In this document: positions 6,211-47,600 of the stretch, piece by piece
How the letters are laid out: each line of letters starts with the position of its first letter
Numbering within the stretch: the first letter of the stretch is position 1
Assembly: GCA_047495785.1 (NCBI GenBank)
Contig: JBLDXI010000045.1
Coordinates: 558,001-622,000 of the forward strand
Origin: Lepidodermella squamata
Taxonomy: Eukaryota; Animalia; Gastrotricha
Direction: 5' to 3'
Length of the DNA stretch: 64,000 nt
Notes under the pieces: generated by a model
Told to the model about the DNA's origin: nothing
The model's input: only the letters and a program-made list of their open reading frames with translations
The model's database searches: none
Translations under genes and position numbers: made by a program

Positions 6211-7333
6211 CCGCCAGCACGTGTAAATACGCACGATTTTAGTCAATGCGCTCTCTCATTCTAGTGATGAATTTTTCGGTTTTAATAATGTTCATTCGAT
6301 GATTTTCGGTTACTTTTCTGTGAAAAAGCAGCGCTTTGCTCAAAAAGCATCAGAATAACTGTTTATATACCTACATATATATATTGAATTTTGACTACCC
6401 GACGATATACGCTAACTTGAGCTGCCATAGCTTACAATCGGGATGACAAGACGAGAAACAAAAATCGATTTATACTTTTACCATCAATATGAATTATTAC
6501 GAGAATCACGCTGTTTTTTAAATTTATCATCATCATCATATTCAAGCTGTAATGATAATGATAACGTTATTATTGCTACTGTTCTACTTTGTCTACATTA
6601 TCGATCGAACAACCGATCCACTTTCGATGATCGGTTTCAGCGTATCGGACAGGCACTAAATCGTTCTCTCTCTCTTTGAAATGAAACCTGCACAATGCCA
6701 TGCCTGTTTTTGATGTTTTCGTTGCGTATTGAATTTGATAATAAAATCAGTCATTTTCTCAGTTGATTATTTTGAGCGTTCATGTTGGGTTACTTATGAA
6801 AGGAACATTCGAGCTTTGACACTACAGCTTGAGCTCATGAGTGACAAATCGAAGTCAAATTACCAAATCGAAAGCGATTCATTGCAGAATAGCAGCAGTC
6901 AACTCGAAGTTACTGAGCTCTCTTCGCGCTGACTGGGTCACAATTCGGTACACGTTGAATAGAACCATAACATTGGAGTGGAGGGATAGCCATCAATGAC
7001 ATGATGCAGTTGTCACGTATTTAATCGATAGAATATTTTCCGATTTGCTCATCATCTGATGTCCTCAAGCGTTAAAATATGAATGTCCACTGTTCTCCTT
7101 TTCCCGGAATAGCCCGCTTGAAATCCAAGGAGGAACCGCGCCGTTCGAACAAAACGGTTATCCGAGTAAATACATACAACTATAGGTACTGCTGAACGAT
7201 AATTTGATATTGGTACGAGATGCAATCGCAACAAAAATTCGAATATGGCCAGTTCAGATCTAACTACAGACCAGTTACGAATGCTGCATCGATTTACGCG
7301 AGGAATTCTACAAACACTATTTCAAGATAGGTA

Positions 7334-7735
7334 CCGTAAATGTTGAAATACTAGCCCGGGCTTCTAGATTTTCAATATCCAAAAAGGGTGGGCTTCTATT
7401 CGAGATGGGCTAATAGAAATAAGTAAAGGGCAACCGTTCTAACTTTATTCATCTTCTAAGAACATTTCCGCCTCATCGTTGCTGTAATCACACTTATTCA
7501 TAGGATCTCCTTCATCATTTGAATCATTTTCATTTTGCTGAGATGAAGCTATAGAATCACTTGTTTTGGCAAAAAATGAGTCAACCGAGTCGCTTTGCTA
7601 TAGCCGTACAAATTTACGTAATAGCCTGGGCTTCTATTCGAGGAGAGCGTATGGGTCAATGTATCGTTGCTTGGGTGGGCCTCTATACGAGATGGGCTAA
7701 AATTCGCGAATAGGCTAGTATTTGAAAATTTACGG
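7334..7735. mobile_element. Tc1/mariner-pogo type MITE, ~400 bp
   Basis: TA target duplication. TIRs CCGTAAATGTTGAAATACTAGCC / GGCTAGTATTTGAAAATTTACGG. Internal repeats of GGGCTTCTATTCGAG. Confidence 0.85.
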
Positions 7736-10700
7736 TATAAGTGATATATTCTGCGACTTCCAAGCTATCTTACCAAAGCGGGACCATGCCAAGATAATTT
7801 TAGGTACGCATATCGCCAATAGCTAACATTTCCTGTTTTCACAGAGTTCTGTTTTGAGATTGAGTTTCAATAAACAAGAAACTGAATTTCAAATGGTGGA
7901 TACTAAAGATTATTTCTCAGAATTTCTAAGATTTTGGCAAATTGTTGAATTCACGCTAAAATTGAACTAAAATTAAGTTTTTTTTACACTTGCACCTATG
8001 TCGAATCGAGCCGCCTAAATCGTCGCCAACGATATATATCAGCAACGGCCACTTCTTGAATCTCATAAGATTCAAATTACACGATGCCCTCTATCAACTC
8101 TATCAAGATTTGACCTCATCAAATTAAGTGGACCAATAAAGGCGGACACGCGTACAGGTGCGTCTGTGTTTGCGCCGTGTCTCGGAGGTGCCGGTGTTTG
8201 TTTGCCGTAGACACGAAGCCGCGAACTTCGATCGGGCGTCGCATTAAGGCGGAAGGCCGGCCATGTGATCGGCGCAACACTATAGGCAACAATAGTAGTC
8301 GGCCCGGCTTTACGACGCCTAATTAGGCTCACAGCAACCATCGTCATCATCATCTCACAACAAAAGCGCATCGACACGAGAGAGCGAAAGAGAGAAGAGT
8401 CATCGTAAAATGAGGCTAATGTCATCGATGGAGACGCTGATGCTTTTTCACTTTGTTAAAGGTGCTGCCACCATTTTGCGCTGTTTTGTGTATCTGTTTT
8501 CCGGATCATATAGCAATAAGATTTCGCGCACGCTTTCGTATAATATAATTTCGCCGCCGTTATATGACCGGCAGCAACAGGTTTTGTTGACCCCATCATC
8601 TTTGATTTTCCAAGTCAAAATTTGCGCGTGTGCGTGTTCAACAACGCGAACCGCCGCCACGCGCTGGAAGCAATAAGAAGACATCTCGCTTTCCGTATTA
8701 TTATTATTTCTTAATAATTATACTTTGTGTTAAAACGTGTGCGCTCGCTCGTGTTCCTGGTTTCGCATTTTACACCGCCGTTTCGCAGTTTCATATCTTT
8801 CTAATATTGAATTAATATATATAACGCGGCCTCATATATCTATGGCGCATCTGAGCCGGAAACACTCGGCCGAGCCAGCTTTCAGTCTATTAACGTTGTT
8901 TTGTTTGGTGTCTTGTTGTCACGGCTATTAAGTTTACTAATAGCTTCGAAGAGGCTTTGTTTCTGCCTACTCAGCTGTCAAAAAAATATTCAGTTTCGAG
9001 CTGCAACACACAAAACATAACTGCTCATTTTTCGTTGAGTATCAGTTACCGATGATGCCAACAAAAGATAATAAAGAGCCCGAGAGTTAAGTTTTTTGTT
9101 TATCCTTTTATATAAGCCATTATCGTCGTATCGTTATGATCGCTTATTTACGATGAAGGCATATAGCAGTAGCCGTTAATTTGACCACTGGCGAAATGCC
9201 ACAAGGTGACACAAATGTACCCGTGGCAATCGAAAATATACCGAACCGCGCAGCGCTGGTGCATCGCGGAATTCTACCTATTATTTCTCCACCACCACCA
9301 CCACCAGCGCAAAAGAGGCTACCTTTTGTGTTTTTTATATAAGCGCTTTGTTTTGATAAATATTTTTGCGCACATTCTTTATTACAGTATTTACCGGCCG
9401 ATAAAAACAGATGGCTCGATGATGAGTGGGATCGGCGTTTATTATCTTTTTTTACGCCGCGCGCCCTCTTCATCCCAGCCGATATAACATTCAATTTTTC
9501 TCCACTGGTCGATTTAGAAAACATATTATATCGCAAGGTAAATAATAATAACACGCCTTATAGCTGTAAGCACGCGAAAAACGCATCGTCTTAAATAAGC
9601 GTCGGGACGGGCAATAAATCAGCTCAACCGGTCAGTTAAAACAAGGCTAATTTCGTTTTAATGAATTTATTTACCTTGATCGCATTCGTAAAGACTTTTT
9701 ACAATAACAATGCCATTGTCTTAAGGTATAAATTGCGTTTTTGATCTCGCAATCACGCCTTAAAAATTGCGCGCGCGCACGCAGGTAAAAGCGCGTGTAG
9801 TAAAAAGCTTCATTCAGCGAATTGAAAACCATTGTAATTTATCGAAGTGTAAAACTCGACCCTGACGATGATTATTAGCGCGGTTTATTTTCGCGGCAAT
9901 CATCATCGTAATTTAGGTGTTGAGACCAATGCTTGTGTTGTATGCTATATTATGTTATAAAGCCGTCAATTTGTGGTTACGGCTAGGGTTAGATCCAAAA
10001 CGCACGCTTCGGCTTGATCCCGCTGTCTCGGCAATAATCCGCCCCAACAATAATGCCGTCGTAAGCGTCTGCGAACCGTCAAAATTTCTAAACAAACACT
10101 AATATAATGAAAACGCCTTGATTTATTAGGCTGCGCGCGCTTTTCGAAAATTTCGCGCAATACCCGATTTTTTTATTGACAAGTGCCGACACATGCGAGC
10201 ACGAGTTTTGTGTTTACGTCATGTTCATGTCGTCTTAATACCGGAAATATTACCTTAATAAAACAAGGTTTGATATTATATTGTTATTTATACATTGTAC
10301 AGCCTTAAAACTCGTGCCAGTTTGCTACCTATCTGCCTACCATCAACCAACCAACGTCGAGTGGCCACCAACGTTCGTGTTGTGGCGTTTTATAGGGTTC
10401 GCAAAACGACGTCGTTGCGTGAGCAAACGACCTGTTGTAGTATACACCGTTTTGTATGTATTTCCATTTTAGCAACTTTTCTTCGAAGACTGTTTTTCGT
10501 AAACACGCGCAGGAACAAAACGAGACTTGAGCTCAGTTTTCGCCAAAAATTATTGTATTAATAATGACTCGGTATTACTACTGCTGGACAAATTTAACGC
10601 GTCGTTTTCTACCTTGCTAGTAATATTATTACTACGATATCATGACAAATGTGACATCTAAACTAGCATTTTGCTACCTTGCGCGCGTATATTTGGTATT

Positions 10701-28316: not shown

Positions 28317-29213
28317 TCAATCGAGCTCATCGTCAAAATTGCAGTGGGTTATTTCAACCTCGCCGAATTCGAACGGCTTGATGAATTGATAAGCATTTGC
28401 GTCGCTTTTACTCGTAATTGCCGGTTTGAAAGATATCCCAGGAATAGGCTCGTCCAAACTCGACGCGACTTGCATTCGAAAGTTCATCAATTCATCGACA
28501 TTCAGGTCGCGAGTTGACTTTTGCCGCAGCGATTCAAGCTGCGATTTCAGCCGTTCCGAACTTTGGCAACACGCCGCGTGATACTCGGCCATAGCCGCCT
28601 CCACATCTTCCACAGCCTTGCCTTCAATCGCAATGATTTTCGCGTCGAAAACGCGCCGAATATCGTCCAGAATTTTAGCCGTGAAATCTTTCAGATGGCA
28701 GTGCAGTTGTTCGAGGTCGATTTTTTTCTGCGCCTCTGCATTCGCCGATCTTTGCTGCGGCGTTGGCACGCTTTCGTAGAATTTGATAACATCTTGCCGC
28801 AATTCTTCGAGGTGAACAAGCCGGCAAGGCTGGCAGAACGTTACGAAGCAGTGTTTACATTGCTGCTTAGCAACGCCGAAAATGTGCTCGCAAGATTTGC
28901 CGCTCGCTTGATTATTTTCTTGAAGTTCGAAAAATTCTACGACCTGTTTCAGGCCGATGTTGATGTGATAAGCCGAGACGCCGTTCGGGCTGACGCGGCT
29001 CTTTGCTCGGCAACTTGGGCAGATTATGAAAGGGCGTGATTCATTGGACCGGTCAATCGGCATTCGAGAGAGACATTCATCGCATAGAGAGTGGGAACAT
29101 CCGGGTAAATGTCGAGGATTCCGGTAGTAACATAAGCAAATCGGACATGTGATTCGAGAACGAAAATCCTCAACAGCATCGGCCGATGTCGAGGATGAAG
29201 GTTGATCAGTCAT
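28317..29213 (-). CDS. Intronless TRIM/RBCC E3 ligase (RING, B-box-like, coiled coil)
   Basis: C3HC4 RING CPIC..LPGCSHSLCDEC..CPSCR, then CEH..CKHC..FCQPCRLVH and a helical C-terminus. Confidence 0.85.
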   Translation of the reverse strand: MTDQPSSSTSADAVEDFRSRITCPICLCYYRNPRHLPGCSHSLCDECLSRMPIDRSNESRPFIICPSCRAKSRVSPNGVSAYHINIGLKQVVEFFELQENNQASGKSCEHIFGVAKQQCKHCFVTFCQPCRLVHLEELRQDVIKFYESVPTPQQRSANAEAQKKIDLEQLHCHLKDFTAKILDDIRRVFDAKIIAIEGKAVEDVEAAMAEYHAACCQSSERLKSQLESLRQKSTRDLNVDELMNFRMQVASSLDEPIPGISFKPAITSKSDANAYQFIKPFEFGEVEITHCNFDDELD

Positions 29214-29516: not shown

Positions 29517-31419
29517 TGCCCCCTGTGAGGATCGAACTCACGACCTCCAGATTATGGGGGTTATGTTGGAATCTAGCTTAAACTTTCCGTATCTTTTCCT
29601 AAGTTAGGCTAAAACTTGAGCCGAGATCTTTCTAAATATCCAATTACTCCGGGACACTTTTCTAGTGTTGTCCTATATCATTTCTAAAACCAATTGTTGA
29701 ATCGTCCCTTTTTAATTTTCAATGTGTCATCTGCAAGAAGCAAGTGAGATTATGGAATATAATCTAGAACGATTGAGTTTTTCAGCAGCATTCTTCCGCG
29801 GTGTCAATATGATAAAATAACTAGGTAGATGGTAGATAAAAAAGTTGATAGGATTTCACGGCTATCCAGTTGGCTATTTATTATTATTATTGTTATTAAA
29901 TGATTCAGGAATTATACACGTTTAGAATCTCGACGGCCTACCGGAGGCAAGGCTGGACAATCAGGACCGAGGACTATTTCTTTGTAAATTGTAAATTAGC
30001 TAGCCTTGAATTTTGATGAAAAAATTTTCCGCCGACGATGAGACGACTGAATTATGATGGCTTCTCGCAAACACCACCGAGGAGCCATGTCAACGAGGCG
30101 ACGAGGCATTAATTATAAGAACATGAATCTCCATGCTTGAATTTGAAAATTTTTAAAATCATTTCATCAGTAGGTATGCCCTGGAAAAAAGGGACAACCC
30201 ATAGTTACGAAACAGTGAGACGAGGCGGCCGCGTTGCTGCACCATGCCAATACAGTTCGTCATTTCTAGTTCTCGCGAGAAGTATTTTTCAACTATCATG
30301 CGAATTGGCAAAAGTTCTCTCTGAATTTGCCATTGAGCTGGGGAGAATTCATGGCCACCTAGCTGTTATTGTTCAGGTGAATTAAGCTTCTGTTGAATTT
30401 TGAATTTTTTTGCATTATTCTTCTCAAAAAATGTAGTTGGGCATGAATGGCCTAAAATTCATGAAATCTGCAGCTGATCTGAAGCTAGTCTATTTTTGTG
30501 CCTCGAAGACGTACATAGGTAATCAGTATAATCGTAATCGGTTAGATATTAGTGAATACCGGTGCATCATGGCGAAATCCAGCGCTTCAGGAATTCGGTC
30601 AACTGGGCTGAAAACCCAATGAAAACCCACCTGATACATTCCATTATGATTACGAAATATTGTTTATGTCTCTAAAATTCTTAACCTCATTTCTTAATGA
30701 CCTGAGCGTAACAAAATAAACTGGGGCAATTTAATTTGATTTATAAAGTGGCGTACGGGGCGGATTGGGGACAATAATATATAACAATTCAATGCCTGAA
30801 ATAATAATTTTTCAGCGGTCCTGAGCGGGGAAAAATTAGTTCGCCAATTATATCGAAATATTGTAATATTGAATAATAACTATTTTGCGATAAATTCAAC
30901 GCAGAAAACGTTTATCATTGACCGATCGCAAACGAAATAGTCGGGACCGTCGAGAAATATTGCGAGTAATATTACAGCCGAAAATTTAGATTTTTTATTG
31001 ATAATATTGGAATGAAAATATCATAACGCACTTTCAACTTTTCGAAATTTTGAATTCCGCGCCATCGAGCAATGGCGCTATAAGACGCGCCATCCGCCGG
31101 TTGGGCCGTAATACCCGTTTTTTTGTAAACCTCCTCGTACATGGTTTGAAAAATTCTGAGTTTAAACCAGGTTTAGCGGATAAAACCTCTAAAACCTGCA
31201 AATTTTCTCTCATTGGTACATAGGTTTTTTAATCGAACATAGGAATTTTCTTCTATTGCTCCATTTTATATACGCGAACAATGGTGAGTCCCAATACGCA
31301 ACAATGGTTGCTTTGGAAATGAGAGGAAAACTTAAACCTTAAACCTTAATCCAACATAAGGAAGGTTCCAACATACGCCCCTATGAGACTGGCGCTCTAG
31401 CCAACTGAGCCAAGGAGGC
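29517..31419 (-). pseudogene. tRNA-Met(CAT) elongator gene split at the anticodon by a 1826-bp insertion (5' half 31382-31419, 3' half 29517-29555)
   Basis: Joining the halves and removing one TAT copy gives exactly the reverse complement of the intact tRNA at 38875-38948. Confidence 0.95.
29556..31381. mobile_element. Non-autonomous DNA transposon (GG-terminal TIR, 3-bp TSD; PIF/Harbinger- or Zator-like) inserted in the tRNA-Met anticodon
   Basis: TIRs GGGGGTTATGTTGGAATCT vs GGGGCGTATGTTGGAACCT. TAT is duplicated at 29553-29555 and 31382-31384. Subterminal CCAACATAA repeat. No transposase ORF inside. Confidence 0.88.
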
Positions 31420-31934
31420 TGCTTGCGAATATAGAAATTCTCTTTGCTCTCAACTGTAAGAGTCTGCCCAACTTCAACCTTCGATACCTTCTTATCGCTT
31501 ATGCTTTATCTCTAAAACATTATCAAGGTCGCTGAGTATCTGGCTGAGACTTATTTCCAGAACTCTGAGTGGTTACTAAAGCTCAGAGACGGTTTTGGTA
31601 CCAGCACAGTTGATATTGAATACCTCAAACTTTCGGAATCTCGATTTGGGTGAATCTAAGTTTCCAACTGAATTCATTGGTTTTTTTGCAAAACTTTCCA
31701 TCCTGGCCGGTATAATACACGAGAAAAATGTATAGAAAAAGTCAATAGCTGAACTAAAGCGTCCGAAAAATATTAAACCAGTTTTATTGCTGGAACAATT
31801 TATATAGTTTGAACAAATACTTCAGGGATGAGCAGAGGGAAAACGTTAATCCGATGATTCCTAACAAATCACGATTGCTGGAGTAAAAAGTATAGGTAAG
31901 TTATATAATCTGGGGGAATCAACATTCAAAAATT

Positions 31935-34900
31935 CTAAAAGCGAATTGCACGCTTCGACACAGCAATCTTGCACACTTCTTGAAGATCTGGCGTCATGCA
32001 GCTTTCTGCATCAGCACCGTGGTTCAGCAGCTCAACCATGGTTTTGATCGCTTCGTCTTTTTCGTACCATTTAGCTGCACGGATTGCCGTAGTTGCAGCA
32101 CGAGACAGGGCCGAGCGCTTTTTGTAGTCCTTGTGATTGACGAAATCAGAGTTCGAGTTTTGCTTCAAGATCAAGCGGACGATGTTGACATAGGTGTCGC
32201 GAGACGCCAGGGTCAGAGCGGTAGCAAACTTTTCTTCAGTCTTCAGATCGACCCTTGCCTTCTTGTTGATCAAAGTTCGCACAGTTTTGTATCGGCCGCT
32301 CAGGGTTGCCATGATCAAAGGAGTGAAGCCTCGGTATTCCTGAGCGTCAATATCGGCGCCGTTATCGATCAGAAGGTTGACGATATCGAGGAAATGGCGT
32401 TCAGTGGCAACATGAAGAGCTGTCATATTGCCTGCAGGTGATCGAGCGTCAACAGGGGCACCGCGCTCCAGCAATTTCTTAACAACATCATACTTGCCCA
32501 AGGAGACGGCGTTGTGAAGAATGGGTCCAGTCGCAGACATCTTCGATACATCGAATCCATCATCAAGCATTTGATCAATGATGTAAGTGTTGTCGCTGAC
32601 AATTGCTTTAGCCAATTCATCGAAAGCATCAAGTTTGAATGCGGTCAGGCAAGTCTCAACCCGACACTTGCTGATATCAGCTCCCTTTTCTTTCAGGGCC
32701 AGCACCAACTCTTCCTGCTTCATCCTGCCAGCAACAACCAGAACAGTGTCGCCATTGTGATCCGGAGTTTCCAGATCAATCTTCGTAGCGTCATTCATAA
32801 TTATTCTCTGCGCAAGGTCGTACAGCTCATTTTCGATAGCGAGGTGCAACGGAGTCGACTTCTTTCCTTCAGCGGGCGAGCATAGCGTTTTCGTAATATC
32901 GACGCCACCATGTAGAAGAGACTCTGCAGCCTCATGCTGTTTTGCTAGGATGGCGGCAATGAACGGAGTCTGGCCAGTTGAAGGGTCGCAGAAGTCTTTG
33001 TCCGCACCGCTTAGTAGCATGGCCTCCATTTGTTCCAATTTACCGGTACGAGCTGCTTCGATGAGCTTCAAGTCGACGTTGCCAAGGCACAGGCGATGTT
33101 TGCACTGGGCGGTATCAGCCTTTTGATCGACCAAATACTGAATTTCACCTTCATCATTGTTGCGTTCGGCGATATCAAGCGGCTTCTGATTGGCTTTGTT
33201 CGGCTTGTTGATCATCTCAGAGATTTCAAAGCTCTTCAACTTTTCGAGGAGCGACTTGTTGTTCTGGAGCAAAGCAGCCATCAGCAAAGTGTTGCCATCT
33301 TCGTCCACAATGTTTGCGAGATTGCCGTATTCTACAGCCAACTCTTTCGCGGCTTCGGTCTTCTTTCCATCGACCAACTTTTGGAGAATTTCAAAGGGTT
33401 TCAATTCCAGAGCTTCGATTAAGTACTTCTTGGTGATAGTCTCAACTTCGCGAGTTCCTTTTTTGGAGCTGAAAAGCTTCTTCGCCATTGGCTTGTTCTG
33501 GGCTTTGGCAGCAATAGAGATGGCGGACTCTTCGTCGTTGCTCTTCATCCAACAATCAGCACCTCGCTCCAATAGCAGATCAACCAGTTCCTCCCTCTTC
33601 TTTGTTACGGCATCGATCAGGAACGTGCTGTCAGATTCGACCAGTTCAGGATAGGCCAACAGCTTAGCCATTTCGACGTGGTTGTGTCTAATGGCGGAGA
33701 TGAGCAGCTTCTTATCGTACTCCCGATCTTTCTTCTGGAAGTGATTGACCAGATACTTGACAACTTTAGCGTCGTTATCTTGAACAGCATTTTCGACGAA
33801 TCCTTGATATTCTTCTGCAGGTGGAAGGCAGTTCTCGCCTTTGCATGCTTCAAGCTTATCCGCCAATTCCGAGATAATTCGGCGCCAGTAATAATACATT
33901 TGCTGAGAAACTGCAAACTGAACAGCAGTCTCGCCTTCGTCATTCTCTGCCTTGATATTCAAGTTTTCGTCGTTCAGAATGCGTTTGAAAATTTCTTCGT
34001 TGTCAGCCTTCATAGCTTGCATTAAAACGGTCATCGAAGCATCGTCGGCCGTTTTGGCGTTGACATTCGCACCATTCTTCAGCAAGAGCTCGACAAAGTG
34101 GACCGACTCTGAAGTTACTGCCTTCAACAGCGCTTCGTCCTTCATTCGTTTGTCAACACTCTTGATGATTGCGTTGAAATCGGCCATGTTGCCGCTTTCA
34201 ATGCTGCTCAACAGACGACTTCTGAGAACTTGATCGCGCTTGTCGTTGCATTTCGTTGATTTTTCTGGGCATTTTGCACCGCGAATAACAAGCTCGGTGA
34301 TCACTGCATCGTGCTGTTTTGGCTCCTTGATTGCCAAGGACAACGCATTCTCGTTCGAGCCGGCTTCGACATTGATGTTGGCGCCGCGATCTAGGAGCAG
34401 CTTCAAAGCTGCAACATTTCCGGAAACTGCGGCAACTACGAGCGGGGTTTTATCTTGATAGTCTCCGCAGCCTTTGCGTTCAATGAGACCTTCCTCGCCT
34501 TCGATAAGCAGCTTGATCAAGTCAGCATTATTGCCGGGTTTCGCGACGACAACTTGAAGGGCATTCATGCCATTGTGAAGGTTGGGGTCGCATTCAAGGA
34601 GCAAAGATTTGTCGACCAGCATAGCTTTAATCGCTTCCTTATCTCCCTCGTGAGCAGCTTTAAGGAAGTCAGCTAGCTTAGCATTTCCAGGCAAAGATGT
34701 TGATGATCCTGAAGCATCCAGAAACCTCTCAGAGGCAGTGGTTGTTGCTTCAGAGGAAGTTTCAGTTGCAGCAGATGAAGGCTTATCTTGACTTGTGTGG
34801 GTCGTGGTTTCGGCAGCACTGGTTTCACTGGCTTCTCGAGTTGATACTTCACGATTAATTTCAGATGATTCAGTGGTCGATGTTGAAGATGGCTTTTCAG

Positions 34901-36614
34901 TGTTGGAATCAGTAGCGGCGGTGGAAGGAGCTTGGGTTGAACTTTCAATCAGCAGTGAGCCCTTCACAAGTGGAGCAACGACAGTAGTAGCTTCTGTAGT
35001 AGCTTCTGTGGAAGATACTGAAGGACTAGTTTCTTCAGCATTTGATTCGGATGTTGCAAGCGGAGTAGAGGGAGCATCTGCAGTTGTAGATGACGGTTCA
35101 GTAGTAGAAAAATCTTTGACTTCAACAGTTGATTTTCCCGTAGTTGTTTCCGACATTGTTGGTTCAGCAGATTGATCTACTGCTTGTGATTGCTGAGATA
35201 ACGCAGCGATTTGGCTTGAAGAATCTTCAGTTGTCGACGAAGTGGGCGCTTCAGTGGTGCTATCAATCGATTCACTGGCAGCCGAGGGCGTTGAAGCCTC
35301 GGCGCTTTTCGAAGCATCAGTAGTATCTTCAGCATTTGGTTCGGATGTTGCAATCGGAGTTGAGGAAGCTTCGCCGATTGTAGATGATGGCTCAGCAGTA
35401 GAAAGTTCTTTGGCTTCGACAGTTGATTTTTCGGTGGTGGTTTCCGAGGATGTTGGTTCAGCAGATTCATCTACTTTTTGCGATTGCGGAGATGGAGCAT
35501 CGATTGGGCTTGAAGTAGCTTCAGGTGTCGAGGAAGCGGGCGCTTCAGTGGTGCTTTCAATCGATTCACTGGCAACCGATGGTGTTGATGTCTCGGCGAT
35601 TTTTGACGGAACTGTAGTATCTTCAGTATTTGATTCGGATGTTGAAAGCGGAGTTGAGGGAGCTTCGGCGGTTGTAGATGATGGCTCAACGGCTCCAACA
35701 GTAGATGTTTCGGTGGTGGATTCCAAGATTGTTGGCTCAGCAGATTCATCCAAGTTTTGCGATTGCGGAGATGACGCCGCGGTTGAGCTGCTTGAAGTAG
35801 CTCCAGTTGTCGACGAAGTGGCTGGTTTAGTGGTACTTTCAATCGATTCGCCGGCAGCCGTGGATGTTTCAGCGCTTATCGAAGCAACTGTGGTAGGTTC
35901 CGTGGATTGCTCAGGCTCAGTATTAGATGTTAAGGCATCAGCTAAGGTCTGGCTGGTTGGTTTCGTAGTGATTTCGGTGATGTTGGTTGGTTCAGGTGAG
36001 GTTGGTTCTTCATCATCTTCGTAGTCCTCTTCAGTCGCAGCGGGTTCAGTGTTTGATGCTGCTATAAAAACGTCATTCAATCAAGCCTCTCAACGTTGTT
36101 ATTGGGTAATCTTTTCCTTACTTGGAATGCAACCCTTGGGAGTGATATCCCAGGTTCCATCACGTTTGCATCCATAATCTTTCGGACCATCGACTTTATA
36201 ATCGGCCTCGCAAGCGATGACCAATCGCGAACCAGGAGGAACTCTCTCCTCCTCCTTAGCTCCGGTGAATTGATCAGGTGGCGATGTAGTGGAGTACTTA
36301 AGGGACTTGATTTTGAACGCGTTAGACAACTTCGGAATCACACAGCCTTCCTGTACTTCCTGTAGTAATACTCGCATAAAAATCATACCATCTACACATT
36401 CAATAGGTGCTAACCTCTTCATCTTCGTATTCCTCATCCTCCGGTGTGGTCGTCTTATTAACGTCGCCCTGAAAAGTATATTGGATATCGCATGGTGTCA
36501 TTTGTATTTCATACTGAGACATACCGTTTCTAGCTCTACCAAAGGGTTCGATGCTGCCAACGACAGAACAGCGGCTGCTCCGCACAGAAGAAGAAGCCAG
36601 GCTAATCTTGACAT
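31935..36614 (-). CDS. Secreted ~1500-aa protein: signal peptide, sushi/CCP domain, Ser/Thr/Glu mucin-like repeats, ~20 ankyrin repeats; exons 36525-36614, 36415-36468, 36122-36359, 31935-36061
   Basis: Signal peptide MSRLAWLLLLCGAAAVLSLAA. CCP pattern C-VIP...C-EADYKVDG..YGC..DGTW..PKGC. In-frame splices in phases 0, 0 and 1. Many TPL/TAL-H..A..G...V..LL..GAD repeats. No TM segment seen. Confidence 0.85.
35030..35855 (-). repeat. Three ~285-300-bp coding tandem repeats (mucin-like stalk)
   Basis: The unit ESIESTT..SS..QSQ..DESAEPT..ETT..ST..EPSST..STP.ATSE.N.E recurs at about 100-aa spacing. Confidence 0.8.
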
Positions 36615-37432
36615 GCTATAATTTCTAATTCCTAAAATTTACCGAGAAATAATTAATATGAGAAGAAAATTGTTCACGCTGCCATGAAATTTCGGTGAAT
36701 AACTCGGATTTTATAGACTAAAATCTCGTGAATTACGGCAAATTGCGCTATACCATTATATGAGATCCGGTAGCTCATATTTCATCACTGATGTTAATTA
36801 GTTCGAGTTAGACAGGAAAGCATTTGCTAGAGCTCAAAAGGTCACAGAGAGCAAAGCGGCACGTATTTAAAATCAAAATGTATTAAATTACCCCTCTCTA
36901 TACCGGAGTTCAGCAGTTATAACGCGTGATTATGATTTTATTTAACGATGTGAAGCTCCTGCGCTTTTTTTCTGTACGGAAAAAACGCATGTTCGGGAAT
37001 CCGGTACGAGTCAGGTCAGGTCAGGTGATGACGAACGCCTGCATAGCAATTAACCGCGCAGGCATTGTTTGTCTGCTATCGCTTAATGCTGATTCAATTT
37101 ATAAATTCCGAACAATTTCTCGTGATCAATTCTGCATGTAATTATTAGTAATTTGGCATCAATAACACACTGTAACAGATTAATTAATCCTATTTCCAGT
37201 GCCAGCACCATGGTACATGTTACCCTAGTGAGCAAATGCTAAATTTATTTTGAACCTGTCCAGTTCAGGGCTGAAATGAGAACGATGTGATAGTGATAAC
37301 AAATGTAACACAATTTTTGTTGGCAACGATTTCCAGCAGAAATAATTCACTTCATTTTATTGTTTCAATTGTAATTAGTTAATTTACTAATTGCAAGCCA
37401 GTAAAAATGTGCAGATCGTGGCATTGTTAGAT

Positions 37433-38271
37433 TTAATCGTCATCGTTGGGGTTACGGGCAAGACAGTAGGCATCGTTGGCCGCAGCAGACAGCTTTTTGC
37501 ATTTTCTGTATATTGTGTCAAATTGAAATAAGTACAAATAATGAGAAAATTCGAGTATTATTACAGGCCCTTGCAGCAGCCAGCTTGCTTTCCACACGGA
37601 GCACCCTCCCAACGGCAGGTGGGGGCAGCAGCATAGGATTCAGGCTTCGGAATTAGACAGATGGCGTCGCCGGGAGCATCGGAGAGAACGCGGCATTCCC
37701 TTAGAAGGCAAAGTGTTATGATGTAAGCTATGGACACTTGGAGAAATAAGGAAAGCCTTACATGCCATCGCAGCAAGTATTTTCTCCATCACAGGGAGCA
37801 CCTTCCCAACGGCAGGTAGGGGCAGCAGCATAGGATTCAGGTTTCGGAATGAGACAGATGGCATCGCCAGGAGCATCAGAGAGAACACGGCATTCCCTAA
37901 ACAGGCACAATGTTTATTAAAAAGCTTGGAATTGTTGGAGAAATGAGGAAAGTCTTACATGCCATCGCAGCAAGTATTTTCCCCATCACATGGAGCACCC
38001 TCCCAACGGCAGGTGGGGGCAGCAGCGTAGGATTCAGGCTTCGGAATCAGACAGATGGCGTCGCCGGGAGCATCGGAGAGAACACGGCATTCCCTTGGAA
38101 GGCAAAATTTTATGTTATAAGCTAAGGTTAGTTAGAGCAATAATGAAAGTCTTACATGCCATCGCAGCAACCGGTTTCCCCATCACAGGGAGCACCCTCC
38201 CAGCGGCAGGTAGGGGCAGCACTCGCGGCGGCCATCATTGCGACGGCAATAGCGACGTAGGTGAGTTGCAT
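37433..38271 (-). CDS. Secreted 197-aa precursor with four tandem inhibitor-cystine-knot (knottin) peptides; exons 38156-38271, 37959-38093, 37762-37896, 37565-37699, 37433-37505
   Basis: Signal peptide MQLTYVAIAVAMMAAASA, then 4x C-X6-C-X5-CC-X4-C-X11-C (e.g. CRWEGAPCDGENTCCDGMECRVLSDAPGDAIC). All introns are phase 2. TATAAATA at 38345-38352. Confidence 0.92.
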
Positions 38272-38874
38272 TTCGAAGTTGGCGGCTTTTTTTTTAGCGG
38301 AATTAAGTTTTAGCGGAATGATTTTCGGCCTAGAAATCGACCGGTATTTATAGCCTCGGTTGTGGGAACTAGCCGAGGCTGAATCTTTTTCAGGTCTAAG
38401 TGCAGCCTGATAATTACGGCTGAGTGGTTCCACCTGGTGGGTTTGAACCGAAAAAACAGCACATATTTGTTATCAGCAACCGTCTTGAGAACGCGGAAAG
38501 ATAGGTTTTTGGCAATAACTCGTGGCGGCCGAATGAAGAATTCTAGAAACTTCTAGAACGTCCGTCGAATCTGGAGCATGAAAAACAGAACCAAGTCACG
38601 AACAATGATTCATCAAATATTAAATTGAGATTTTTCATCAATCAATCAAGGGCCACTTATGTGAGCATTACTCTGAAGGTTGCCCTGCTCAACCCGATCA
38701 GAAAGTTCACGATTTGTTTGCATTTCTTGAGGAAATTTCTGAAATGTAAGCTTCGATTTATTTTCATGCAGAATTTTATTTCTATTTCAGCGGCTGAAAA
38801 TCAGTCGAAAAAAGGAAGAAATGTCTAGACTTATTTTATTATGATCGCCAATCGCCAATCGCCAATCGCAAGCA

Positions 38875-38948
38875 GCCTCCTTGGCTCAGTTGGCTAGAGC
38901 GCCAGTCTCATAATCTGGAGGTCGTGAGTTCGATCCTCACAGGGGGCA
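38875..38948 (+). tRNA. tRNA-Met (CAT), elongator, intact
   Basis: Acceptor stem GCCTCCT/AGGGGGC, anticodon loop CTCATAA with the U31-U39 pair, T loop TTCGATC, and a T5 terminator 9 nt downstream. Confidence 0.97.
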
Positions 38949-40060
38949 GCTTCAAATTTTTAATTTTTTTCGTCCTCCCGATCGCTTCTAATTTCCTCTC
39001 TTCACTCGGGCGATCTAATATCACGAAGACGATGAATATGATATTTTGTATTTTTCTCGAAATTCTGTCTCCAGGAAGCAATAAAACGAAAGCCAGTATA
39101 TAAGAACCAGCCATAGCCAAGTGCAAGCTAATATAAATAAGCCACTGTGCGTGAAGGAAAAAACACATTCTTGAAAATTTCAATTTTATAAGGCCGCACG
39201 GTCCAAGACTTACGAGAACTGCGGCTCGTTCGTTTTTCCGCCGCGGTTTGTCAAACTTTGCGCGATGTATTTTTATCGAGTCGATCGATGCGGCCAAGAA
39301 ATTGCTACATATTCTGGGCGTCTATATAATTGTCTATAGTCTATACCCCTTCATTTTCGCACTGAAATACAGGAAAATCCGACGCGGCACGCTCTTATAA
39401 AGCATGAAATAGCCTCTTGTAATATTTTCGCGTGTTTTTATCGATTCCCTATTGGTAAAAACAAAACGCGCGACTGCGGTGACCAACGAGTCGTAAAACC
39501 ACAGCCTATCAACGTCCTGCATGTGGAGCAGTCTTGTGAAGGGATTACTATTATTATTACTAAAATAATGTTTTCCCCCGACTTCTTCACGCTATACCCA
39601 GAAGATTTCGTAATTTGGTATTATCAACTCAAAATCGAGCCGATGATGCTTTTATTGCGCCTTTTACATTGTAACATGTCCTTTGTGGGTCTAAATAATG
39701 GCCCGTGGTGGCTAATCGCCAAGAAAATAAACGACGAACTTGGCGACTATTTTTAGGCTAGCACTCAAAACATTGCGGCGACAAGCTATAAGCTATCGGC
39801 AAATAATACAGCCGCGAGCGCCGGCTCCCCGCTCAATTACATTATTTACTAGTCCGCTTTATGTTACATTCGGATTTTTTCATTTTAATTCCGGCCGCGC
39901 CCCGTTTCGATGAATGAACCTAATAAGTTTTTTTCTCGAAAACTATACTGGAAATTTAATTCCGTGTACTACCCCTACATCTATATCGCGATACTGTTCG
40001 CACCAAAAAGACAGCTACAGCTATTTTTTTTCTTTAATAAGGCATTCTTTTACGTGAAGA

Positions 40061-44600: not shown

Positions 44601-47600
44601 TCAATGTATTTACGAAGCGAGTTTGAGAGATGAGTCGATAACGACGGAGTGACGCCTCCCGCCGGGGTTTCGCCGCGGCTCTGATAGTCACGCATCATTT
44701 GAGTCGTCAGCCAGGCGAGGCACAGGCCAGAGGTTTTGTGGTTTTTGTTGAGACTGACAGTGATTGCGGAACCTATTTTCGAGTCGGCGTACATGGCTGA
44801 GCCCATAACAACAGAGTCTTTGAGCCTCGATGAGCTCTCGACGTTATGGTGTTCGTTAAACGAGCCGCATGCGATGTTGCCGTTTCGATCCGCAGCAATT
44901 ACATGCATGCTAAGGAAAAAAAGAAATGACAATTTCGAATTAGTTACTTTCGAAAAATAACATTCAGGATAAGAGAAAATTAATTTAAGCTCTGAATTTA
45001 ATGGGATGCAACCATATGAAATTCGAAATTCGATTTCTGAAATTACGCGATAATCGGTATAATTCAAAAGGTAATAATCGGTAATTTACACAAAAATAAC
45101 TATTCTTGCATAGTTTTCAAGATTTAAGGAATAGGCACGAAATATTCAAAATTTGACGATACCGTAACGCGCCCTAAATTTGGACACCCTAAATTTGGAC
45201 ACTTTGAGCTTTAGCCCCAAATTTCAATTTGCGCATAACTGATAAAAATTTAGAAATTTCACTGAAAAATAGCTCCTTACTGGGCTTTCCAACGATACCA
45301 AATTTGCCTATACTTTCATATACTATCGATTTGCGAAAAATCGCCGAAGCTCGATCACTCAGAAAGAAGTTTTGGGACCCCCCTTGCCAAACGCTCACCT
45401 GTGAACGGTTGGGGCTGAAATTTTTTTTGCACATAGAAATGTACCTAAACTAAAGGGTCCCCCACAGAGCAGCAGGCTTCAAAGCAGGGAAAACGCACTA
45501 AACAGTCCTCTCAGCAAGCGCTCAGGCTTAGCCTCTGATTTTCAACCAATCGACTAACATGATGGTCAGCTATTCTAGCTTTTCACACCAAAAATTGAGG
45601 AACATAAGTCATCAAACCTCCGTAATATGACTCAGACCTCACTTTGGTCGAAAAAGTCGTTTTTCGACATTTTTTCAAAATTCATAAGCCGGACTACTTA
45701 AGTTATGATGAGTCCATATTCAGAAAACTACGCCGAATTTTATCGTAATTAATTCGATTTATGGTTGCGTGGCGTTTGCACCGCTTTTTGAGTTTATCCT
45801 GCTTTGAAGCCTGCTGCTCTGTAGGGGACCCAAACTAAATGCTGTAAAAAAATCTCGGCAGTTGGACGAGCCAATTTTTATACAGGTGACTTTGAATTAA
45901 GGCTCTAAATTTGGACACTTTTTCGCCTACAAGCATGAAAAAAAAACTGCGGCAATTGAAAACTGAAAATATATAGAGTAAATAAAAAACATATAATATT
46001 TTGAATAATATTTTAACAACAATTTAAATATTATTTTGCGTTTTTGACACGCAGTTTACCCGGGAAAATCTTTTTTGGCAATCCGTCTTGGCAATGATCG
46101 TTGACGAGAAATCATGAAGTCTTATCTGAACTTTAACTAGTCATAGCAGTTGAGATCTTCAAAGAGGAATCTGTCAACGAACTTCAAACCCTTTTTAACA
46201 CTATTTAACGTTTTAACGTTTAACAATCGCATATTTGTTTAGAAATTATACTAAATATGAATAATATACTAGCTTTATTGATTTTTACCGGCCTACTGAA
46301 CTGTGGACTAGCTAAGAAGTACAAATTCTCTGCAGAAGATCTTCAAAATGCAATTTACAAGGTACAGACGAAGCAGTTGTCGCTACGGAGAGCTGCGGAA
46401 GTCTACAAGATTGGCAAATCAGATCTATTTAACAAGATTCATTCTTTACATCTGCGCCCCATCGGCCGCCAGATGTCCTTATCTGCTGAAGAAGAGGATC
46501 ATTTGACCTCAACCATAAAAACTCTTCAGCTGTGGAATCATCCGATGTCCCGTGAGGATGTCATTAACCTCGCGAGTCGTCTTGCTGGCAAGGACTTGGG
46601 CGTCAAATGGTTGAGGGAGTATAAGAAAAGACACCTTGACCTATCCGAACGGGTGCCTAGTAATAAACCTGTGCAACGTAACCATATGAACAGTCACAAC
46701 TTGATCAGACAACGGTTTGAGACCCTAAGGAAGATCCTGCCTAATAACCTGCCTGCCAGAAATGTAGTCAACCTTGATGAGACTGGCATTCGCCTTGCGT
46801 ACGGGTCAGGAAAAGTGTTTGCTATAAAAGGAACGAGTCGTGTCGATCAAAATGTTGACGGCAGTGAAAAAGACGTCGTTACAGTGTTGTTCGGCGGAAC
46901 CGCATCCGGAATCTCAACTCCGCCGTTGGTTATCTATAACGGTAAAACCGGTGATGCGAACCATATGCAGGGTGGACCTGCTGATACTCAATACACTGTT
47001 TCTGAGAACGGCTGGATGACCGACGACAACTTCTATTTCTATTGTAAGAATGTTCTTTTCCCGTTTTTGAAACGAAATGCCGATCCGAAATTCAAGATAT
47101 TTGTGTTATGGGATGGCCATATATCTCATATAAGCCTTCGTCTTGTCGACCTCGCTATAGAAGAAAATATTGAGCTGTTGTGCTTCCCAGGAGGCAAGAC
47201 CGACTTGCTGCAGCCTCTCGATTTAACGGTATTTGGCCCTATGAAGAAAGAGTGGCCAAAGATAGTAAACTGATCGGAATAGTTCGAAGCGATCTCAAAA
47301 ATGGGAACGGCAATAAAACCCGTTTAATATGGTTCTATGAAGTTGAAATTTTGAGTTATGCAAGAAAAAAGATACGCGATCATTTAATAAATTTTTAACA
47401 TCCTCAAAAGTCTCTTCACTAATTCCAAATAATTTGTATAATGGCTCCAATTTTAATGGCCATGTGACAGATGTCTAAACTAGTAAATCAGTGGATAAGT
47501 ACCTCAAAGGCCAAGTGTTGTCGAAGATATAGGTGTCCTCTTGCGAACTCGTAACCGATTCAGCCGAAGACGAAGAATGAGTCGAGGGTTCTGCTTTCTC

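Follow-up and report, generated by a model that had tools for sequence, protein, structure and literature searches.

We analysed a 64-kb stretch of contig C45 of the genome of the gastrotrich Lepidodermella squamata (hereafter the window) and focused on the interval 31420-38874, in which a gene predicted to encode a secreted precursor of four knottin units (gene A) and a gene predicted to encode a large secreted protein with Sushi, mucin-like and ankyrin parts (gene B) lie between inverted tRNA-Met sequences. An initial annotation had described this arrangement as a co-regulated cassette of secreted effectors, possibly insulated or invertible between its tRNA genes. We find it probable instead that the layout is a by-product of duplication, insertion and fusion in a fast-changing neighbourhood, and that the bracketing tRNAs are no device but reflect an accident of descent.

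According to the scenario that we favour, an active tRNA-Met gene, lying ~1 kb upstream and in divergent orientation, would have been copied along with a contig-specific family of secreted Sushi-mucin genes. A segment of ~1.5 kb containing a complete knottin gene would have come between the tRNA gene and the Sushi-mucin upstream region, and, inside one exon, additional mucin repeats and an ankyrin array of ~900 amino acids would have taken the place of the short, conserved C-terminal tail of the family. The second, inverted tRNA-Met gene at the far end would have been destroyed by the chance insertion of a terminal inverted repeat (TIR) transposon that duplicates 3 bp of its target.

Only one of the two tRNA-Met genes is intact

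The following features lie at the two ends of the interval.

38875-38948 (+), intact, presumably elongator-type tRNA-Met(CAT), with a T-run directly 3'; same sequence as 70 other genome copies
38751-38874 (no strand assigned), 5' flank of the right tRNA, including (CGCCAAT)3; homologous to the tRNA flanks at the paralogous locus
31382-31419 (-), broken left tRNA-Met, 5' part (38 nt, bases 1-38); exact match, preceded by TCGCAAGCA
29556-31381 (no strand assigned), non-autonomous TIR transposon of 1,826 bp with TIRs GGGGGTTATGTTGGAA / GGGGCGTATGTTGGAA and the target duplication TAT
29517-29552 (-), broken left tRNA-Met, 3' part (36 nt, bases 39-74); exact match, followed by GAGCTTCAATTTTTT

The two copies are divergently oriented, as first described, with the right copy on the (+) strand and the left fragments on the (-) strand, but they are not two identical genes. 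ARAGORN and Rfam alike recognise a single tRNA in the whole window, the tRNA-Met(CAT) at 38875-38948, which scores 65 bits against Rfam RF00005 and which we take to be of the elongator type from its TΨC arm, GTTCGATCC; the left copy is split. At its right end the interval has a working tRNA gene, and at its left end only the 5' part of one that is dead.

The same nine bases, TCGCAAGCA, precede both the left fragment and the right tRNA, and the likeness between the two copies stops 9 nt outside the tRNA. An inverted copy of the 5' part of the right tRNA together with these nine bases occupies 31382-31428, giving arms of 47 nt that are 100% complementary (none expected in shuffled sequences); a second arm measures 41 nt, and 1.8 kb now separates the two. 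Directly 5' of the intact gene there is a (CGCCAAT)3 microsatellite (38848-38868), of which the paralogous loci have one related copy.

The transposon that splits the left tRNA has imperfect TIRs of ~16 nt and lacks coding capacity. It interrupts the anticodon loop between standard positions 37 and 38, which is where the introns of eukaryotic tRNAs sit, and this chance hit mimics a tRNA intron. At least 10 other copies of the family are present in the genome (87-97% identity), and a 3-bp target duplication is clear in nine of the ten whose ends were read, every triplet being different (ATT, TAA, CAA, CAG, AAA, CAT, GAG and TAG among them). A preference of the element for tRNA genes was discarded, as none of the ten other copies lies inside a tRNA. 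Because the target triplets vary and no other copy hit a tRNA, the agreement with the canonical intron position is, judging from these insertion sites, a coincidence. Short TIRs, a 3-bp duplication, the lack of coding sequence and a multi-copy state are shared with PIF/Harbinger-like and other non-autonomous TIR elements that duplicate 3 bp, but the triplets vary and do not follow the TWA typical of PIF/Harbinger.

In the genome searched (121.2 Mb in 151 contigs; the window has ~43% GC) the identical tRNA-Met 74-mer has 70 copies, or 78 if one mismatch is allowed, of which 57 are on contig C15 and 10 on contig C18. The copies sampled on these two contigs sit within dense arrays of Arg-Thr-Met-Glu-Val-Ala tRNA genes. 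Large arrays of such multi-tRNA units, with Ser nearby, were seen at C15:1.6-2.4 Mb and C18:0.23-0.33 Mb; several of the units are inverted pairs, and the arrays together hold most of the 78 copies. Close pairs are common: with the broken copy included, adjacent tRNA-Met genes on the same contig and at most 10 kb apart form 41 pairs, seven of them divergent. The flanks that had been pointed out as shared by the pair in the window turned out to belong to the whole tRNA-Met gene family, which has the pattern ..AAGC(A), tRNA, GCTTCAA-T-run, in which leader and trailer can pair to extend the acceptor stem. The two copies in the window, which share the longest upstream match (9 nt), may nevertheless be each other's closest kin.

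A Sushi-mucin gene family accompanied by tRNA-Met

Contig C45 carries four intact tRNA-Met copies and the broken one, and all five sit at three loci of the Sushi-mucin family to which gene B belongs, which indicates that the tRNA gene and the Sushi-mucin gene have been duplicated together. Locus 2 (C45:852-858.6 kb), 255 kb from the window, contains two tRNA-Met genes, each followed by a homologue of the 5' flank of the right tRNA, the upstream region of gene B, a signal-peptide exon (up to 92% identical to that of gene B), a Sushi exon and the beginning of a mucin exon. Locus 3 (C45:791.4-795.9 kb) has one tRNA-Met and two further family members, and one of the five members of the family lacks a tRNA.

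All five genes share a conserved signal peptide. Across the Sushi exon the paralogues are 76-85% identical, with ratios of non-synonymous to synonymous substitution rates (dN/dS) of 0.24-0.58, a sign of purifying selection, and at the DNA level the family units differ by 22-30%. An unrooted tree separates the two genes of locus 2 (L2_B1, L2_B2) from a group composed of the window copy and the two genes of locus 3, (window, (L3_Ba, L3_Bb)). The intact paralogues are small: L3_Ba consists of a signal peptide, a Sushi domain, ~150 amino acids of mucin and a conserved tail, ..CRRNV[LM]SFSLNIAAKFDVS[YF]L.N*, and L2_B2 has two Sushi domains. The ankyrin part is absent from all four paralogues.

A trace of a further family member was found just beyond the intact tRNA.

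39566-39825 (-), fossil 3' end of a lost Sushi-mucin gene (last ~25 codons and 3' untranslated region), 69-77% identical to the 3' ends of three paralogues

The fossil retains the conserved tail (..ACRRNVLS.SL.I.AKF..YFLG.*), preceded by unrelated sequence, and is a relic of an earlier tandem array. Adjoining the Sushi-mucin genes of locus 3 we also noted an open reading frame (ORF) for a cysteine-rich protein of 167 amino acids with repeated C..CNNC..RG..CC motifs (C45:790155-790658, (-) strand), which may be another small secreted protein.

Architecture of gene B

Exactly two genes lie between the tRNA sequences, both on the (-) strand and ~820 bp apart, in agreement with the earlier description of two co-oriented genes less than 1 kb apart. 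Both models were read from the (-) strand and have clean GT-AG introns. The parts of gene B are as follows.

36615-37245 (-), upstream region (TATAAA at -101), with homology to the corresponding regions of the paralogues
36525-36614 (-), exon 1, signal peptide MSRLAWLLLLCGAAAVLSLAAS; conserved throughout the family of five
36415-36468 (-), exon 2, acidic stretch, with GT-AG introns
36122-36359 (-), exon 3, Sushi/CCP domain (PF00084, 27.9 bits against a cut-off of 20.7)
34651-36061 (-), exon 4, mucin-like part, acidic and rich in Ser/Thr/Pro/Glu, with 3 x 294-nt repeats at 35027-35908
31935-34650 (-), exon 4, ankyrin part of ~900 amino acids (Pfam Ank_2, E 4e-72)

The Sushi domain scores above the PF00084 gathering threshold and contains the expected four cysteines and tryptophan, in the order C..C..C..W..C, which is kept in the four paralogues. 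The mucin-like part (~470 amino acids) is composed of 41% Ser and Thr and 13% Glu and has no cysteine. The reading frame of exon 4 is open for 1,381 codons. No membrane segment was found in the gene B product, whose highest hydropathy over 19 residues (1.69) falls within an ankyrin helix. A cleavable signal peptide, Sushi and mucin parts and no transmembrane segment are the features expected of an extracellular protein. Gene B would encode a secreted acidic stalk, probably O-glycosylated, that carries a Sushi domain on one end and an ankyrin solenoid on the opposite end. Like the product of gene A, it appears to be built for secretion, as had been proposed for both genes from their signal peptides. 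The internal repeats reported for the two genes are also present: 294-nt mucin repeats and ankyrin repeats in gene B, and a 197-bp period in gene A.

The ankyrin part contains 15 cysteines, 10 of which make five close pairs (C-x4-C, C-x6-C and C-x8-C). An AlphaFold model of this part (mean predicted local distance difference test, pLDDT, 80; predicted template modelling score, pTM, 0.43) has helical-hairpin blocks throughout and places the five pairs in the loops between blocks, where they may form disulfide staples. Compared with 5.8 billion proteins, the ankyrin part had generic ankyrin relatives only, at no more than 25% identity across most of the query, and its closest relatives within the genome are 34-38% identical. 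A cluster of ankyrin genes on contig C17 was considered as a source of gene B paralogues and dismissed, the similarity being generic only. Contig C17 carries giant ankyrin-repeat ORFs at C17:2705413-2709874 and C17:2666000-2675999; one such ORF starts with the signal-peptide-like MITRLLLLICLNLFGGIHAG, with the ankyrin repeats directly after it, and another has a hydrophobic tail end. Ankyrin proteins that are secreted or anchored in the membrane may be a more general feature of this genome.

A resemblance of gene B to the latrotoxins, invoked in the initial annotation, is limited to a large predicted extracellular protein with many ankyrin repeats. In a sequence search of the PDB, ankyrin-1/2 (E 6e-69) and designed ankyrin proteins outranked the latrotoxins (E 6e-40 and weaker), and the N-terminal domains of the latrotoxins are replaced in gene B by the signal peptide, Sushi and mucin parts; the similarity is generic, with no specific kinship to these toxins. 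Gene B is closer in design to the secreted Sushi/CCP-mucin glycoproteins, with which it shares a signal peptide, a CCP domain with four cysteines and a tryptophan, and long acidic repeats rich in Ser/Thr/Pro. It differs from the simple form of this type, represented by the four paralogues on the same contig, in having lost the family tail and gained ~900 amino acids of ankyrin repeats. The combination of Sushi, mucin and ankyrin was not found among the protein search matches or in the papers retrieved, and our literature search on extracellular ankyrin proteins and gastrotrich adhesive proteins returned nothing directly relevant. Ankyrin repeats outside the cell are rare, and the survival of the ancestral simple form next door makes the birth of the fusion traceable.

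The knottin gene and the segment that carries it

Gene A lies within a segment that is specific to the window locus.

37246-38750 (-), locus-specific segment of ~1.5 kb with the whole knottin gene, its promoter and its poly(A) signal; boundaries approximate
37433-38271 (-), gene A, five exons (38271-38156, 38093-37959, 37896-37762, 37699-37565 and 37505-37433)

Elsewhere in the genome nothing matches window positions 37127-38870. In each of the two units of locus 2 (C45:852-856 kb) the tRNA flank, which in the window reaches to ~38751, abuts the upstream region, which in the window starts at ~37245, with essentially nothing between them. The segment spans from ~480 bp upstream of the ATG to ~190 bp past the stop codon of gene A, and its edges have neither terminal repeats nor a target duplication. 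An inverted repeat of 17 nt (37128-37144 / 38759-38775) was rejected as the mark of a mobile element, given that its left arm is ancestral sequence found in the paralogues and that no target duplication accompanies it. From this comparison of loci we favour, as the simpler reading, an insertion of the knottin segment in the window lineage, the alternative being its loss from the paralogues.

The product of gene A starts with a signal peptide, MQLTYVAIAVAMMAAASA, followed by four tandem six-cysteine units, which bears out the tandem knottin precursor of the initial annotation. All four units have the spacing C-x6-C-x5-CC-x4-C-x11-C (read across exon junctions by eye), which falls within the inhibitor cystine knot pattern C-x3-7-C-x3-8-C-x0-7-C-x1-4-C-x4-13-C. 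The array is built on an exon plus intron period of 197 bp, every unit being interrupted by a phase-2 intron of 59-62 nt. Linkers of sequence IPKPESYAA, in which there is no dibasic site, connect the units. Units 1-3, with little or no difference in sequence, are strongly anionic; unit 4 is cationic with an acidic tail. A TATAAA box precedes the gene at -81, and the stop codon is followed by an AATAAA signal; a short inverted repeat, CCTCGG..CCGAGG (38352-38390, (-) strand), abuts the TATAAA box. We infer that the product enters the secretory pathway and ends up either as four peptides or as one tetravalent knottin protein.

Of the 135 bases compared between exons 2 and 3, 10 differ, every change being synonymous (dN 0, dS 0.42), while the introns are only 73-79% identical to one another. 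From this substitution pattern we conclude that the gene is real and that its knottin peptide is under strong purifying selection. Sequence searches were made with single exons, each of which corresponds to two half-domains. Within this scope the knottin exon had no match in Pfam and no second copy in the genome, and its sole match in 1.84 billion representative proteins (P0241) was set aside as an artefact, a translated CRISPR array beside cas1/cas2 (a 361-aa 'protein' at positions 7262-8347 of a JGI metagenome contig). Look-alikes proposed by a language model include spider toxin families and small disulfide-rich families, with weak scores (<=0.84). A match of 16 nt between the Sushi exon and the knottin exons is at chance level by our own estimate and was disregarded.

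A signal peptide followed by at least two tandem homologous disulfide-rich domains, and by nothing else, is the architecture of the secreted cysteine-rich repeat proteins (SCREPs) (PMC6262176; ScrepYard, PMC9885460), examples of which are the double-knot spider toxins DkTx and Hi1a, and gene A has this architecture, with short linkers between its units. It differs from DkTx and Hi1a in having four units, not two, in the phase-2 intron within each unit, in the 197-bp exon plus intron duplications, in the strongly anionic character of three units and in its host, a non-venomous microscopic animal, and the single-exon searches of Pfam, the genome and the 1.84 billion representatives yielded no sequence homologue for it.

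Alternative explanations

That the two genes form a co-regulated secretory cassette (for defence, adhesion or a venom-like function), with the tRNA-Met genes insulating the domain or permitting its inversion, seems to us unlikely. The signal peptides on both products, the adjacency and shared orientation of the genes and the persistence of the right tRNA beside family members across ~25% sequence divergence would fit such a cassette. tRNA genes can act as chromatin barriers in yeast and mammals, and the locus resembles these cases in having an RNA polymerase III gene ~1-2 kb upstream of an RNA polymerase II gene, an arrangement kept through duplications. However, a paired tRNA insulator consists of two intact, TFIIIC-bound tRNA genes, and the interval has one intact tRNA; with the halves of the left tRNA 1.8 kb apart there is one boundary at most. 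The association of the right tRNA with the Sushi-mucin family, one of whose five members lacks a tRNA, is explained by co-duplication. Invertible segments have substantial inverted repeats together with a recombinase, or are seen in both orientations, whereas in the one assembly examined the arms are only 47 and 41 nt long and no recombinase is found among the neighbouring genes. Nor do the promoters bear out co-regulation. Both genes have a TATAAA box of their own, and a comparison of the 599 bp upstream of gene A with the 818 bp upstream of gene B gave six shared 9-mers (3.0 expected, shuffle maximum 12) and no shared 10-mer, no more than chance would give. The knottin gene, probably a late arrival, and the ankyrin array are each limited to the window locus, and the former breaks into sequence that runs uninterrupted at the paralogous loci, which argues against a cassette as such. 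A single polycistronic unit, resolved by spliced-leader trans-splicing, would also account for two co-oriented genes 820 bp apart, but it is very improbable: gene A has its own AATAAA and gene B its own TATAAA at -101, the upstream region of gene B was inherited from paralogues that have no knottin neighbour or other upstream gene, and 820 bp is long compared with what is generally known of operon spacers.

The ankyrin part might not be extracellular at all, either because the fusion is recent and non-functional or because an internal start or promoter gives a separate cytosolic product. Ankyrin repeats are overwhelmingly cytosolic, all four paralogues lack them, and the searches returned no orthologue by which to gauge constraint on this part. 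On the other hand, the frame of exon 4 is unbroken over its 1,381 codons, the distance to the nearest relatives in the genome (34-38% identity) implies an array that is no recent copy and has remained open, the five close cysteine pairs of the model lie in inter-block loops, as would be expected of disulfide staples in an oxidising compartment, and at least one other giant ankyrin ORF in the genome has a signal-peptide-like start; we regard a non-extracellular ankyrin part as quite unlikely. An artefact is less credible than any of these. The L. squamata assembly was made from DNA obtained by multiple displacement amplification, a method prone to inverted chimeric molecules, which could have produced the inverted tRNA or the mucin-ankyrin junction, but its authors found no chimeric contig (PMC11660948). 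The reading frame continues across the mucin-ankyrin junction, the transposon in the tRNA is flanked by a clean 3-bp duplication, as are other copies, and the sequence between the tRNAs is unique and not palindromic.

Several points weigh against a history of duplication, insertion and fusion without a regulatory role. All the support for the gene models comes from GT-AG sites, reading-frame phases and conservation among paralogues. Separate TATA boxes are compatible with shared enhancers. The nine upstream bases common to the left and right tRNAs only could stem from an old inverted duplication of a module. On the unrooted tree, a clean deletion in the ancestor of locus 2 would also be a single event, and the copy at locus 3, which has a deletion of its own at the site, is uninformative on insertion versus loss.

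Even as a by-product of such a history, the interval retains its interest for the Sushi-mucin-ankyrin architecture and for a four-unit knottin precursor marked by selection, in a non-venomous and little-studied phylum. To our knowledge gastrotrichs have no venom apparatus; they are equipped with adhesive tubes, a cuticle and epidermal glands, and for these reasons a role in adhesion, the surface coat or defence is more plausible than one in venom. It is conceivable, if doubtful, that gene B is a truly extracellular, disulfide-stapled ankyrin solenoid on a mucin stalk, born by fusion, which acts with the newly arrived and strongly constrained polyknottin as a binding pair in one secretory cell type, for example that of adhesive or of epidermal glands. 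We advise against pursuing the 'cassette between tRNAs' as a regulatory device; it is better taken as an example of a tRNA hitch-hiking with a duplicating gene family.

Neighbouring genes

Exact look-up of eight ORFs of the window in the protein collection gave no match for any of them. An intronless TRIM gene had been annotated just outside the interval.

28317-29213 (-), intronless ORF of 298 amino acids, RING / B-box-like / coiled-coil, outside the interval

An intronless RING/B-box-like ORF is indeed present at this position, but its RING matches (E 5e-5 to 2e-2) remain below the Pfam gathering scores (23.8 bits against 25.2), and no B-box profile matches it, the cysteine pattern having been seen by eye only. 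The other genes of the window are housekeeping or mixed in nature, and include members of the asparaginase family, a pogo-like transposase, a bromodomain/PHD protein and a NIDO-domain protein. The best protein match of an asparaginase exon is 47% identical. Between 41631 and 48152 there are three (-) ORFs with partial Asparaginase_2 matches, and a pogo-like transposase ORF with DDE_1/HTH_psq domains (46257-47273, (+) strand) separates two of the three; the ORFs may represent tandem genes of the asparaginase family with a transposon in between.

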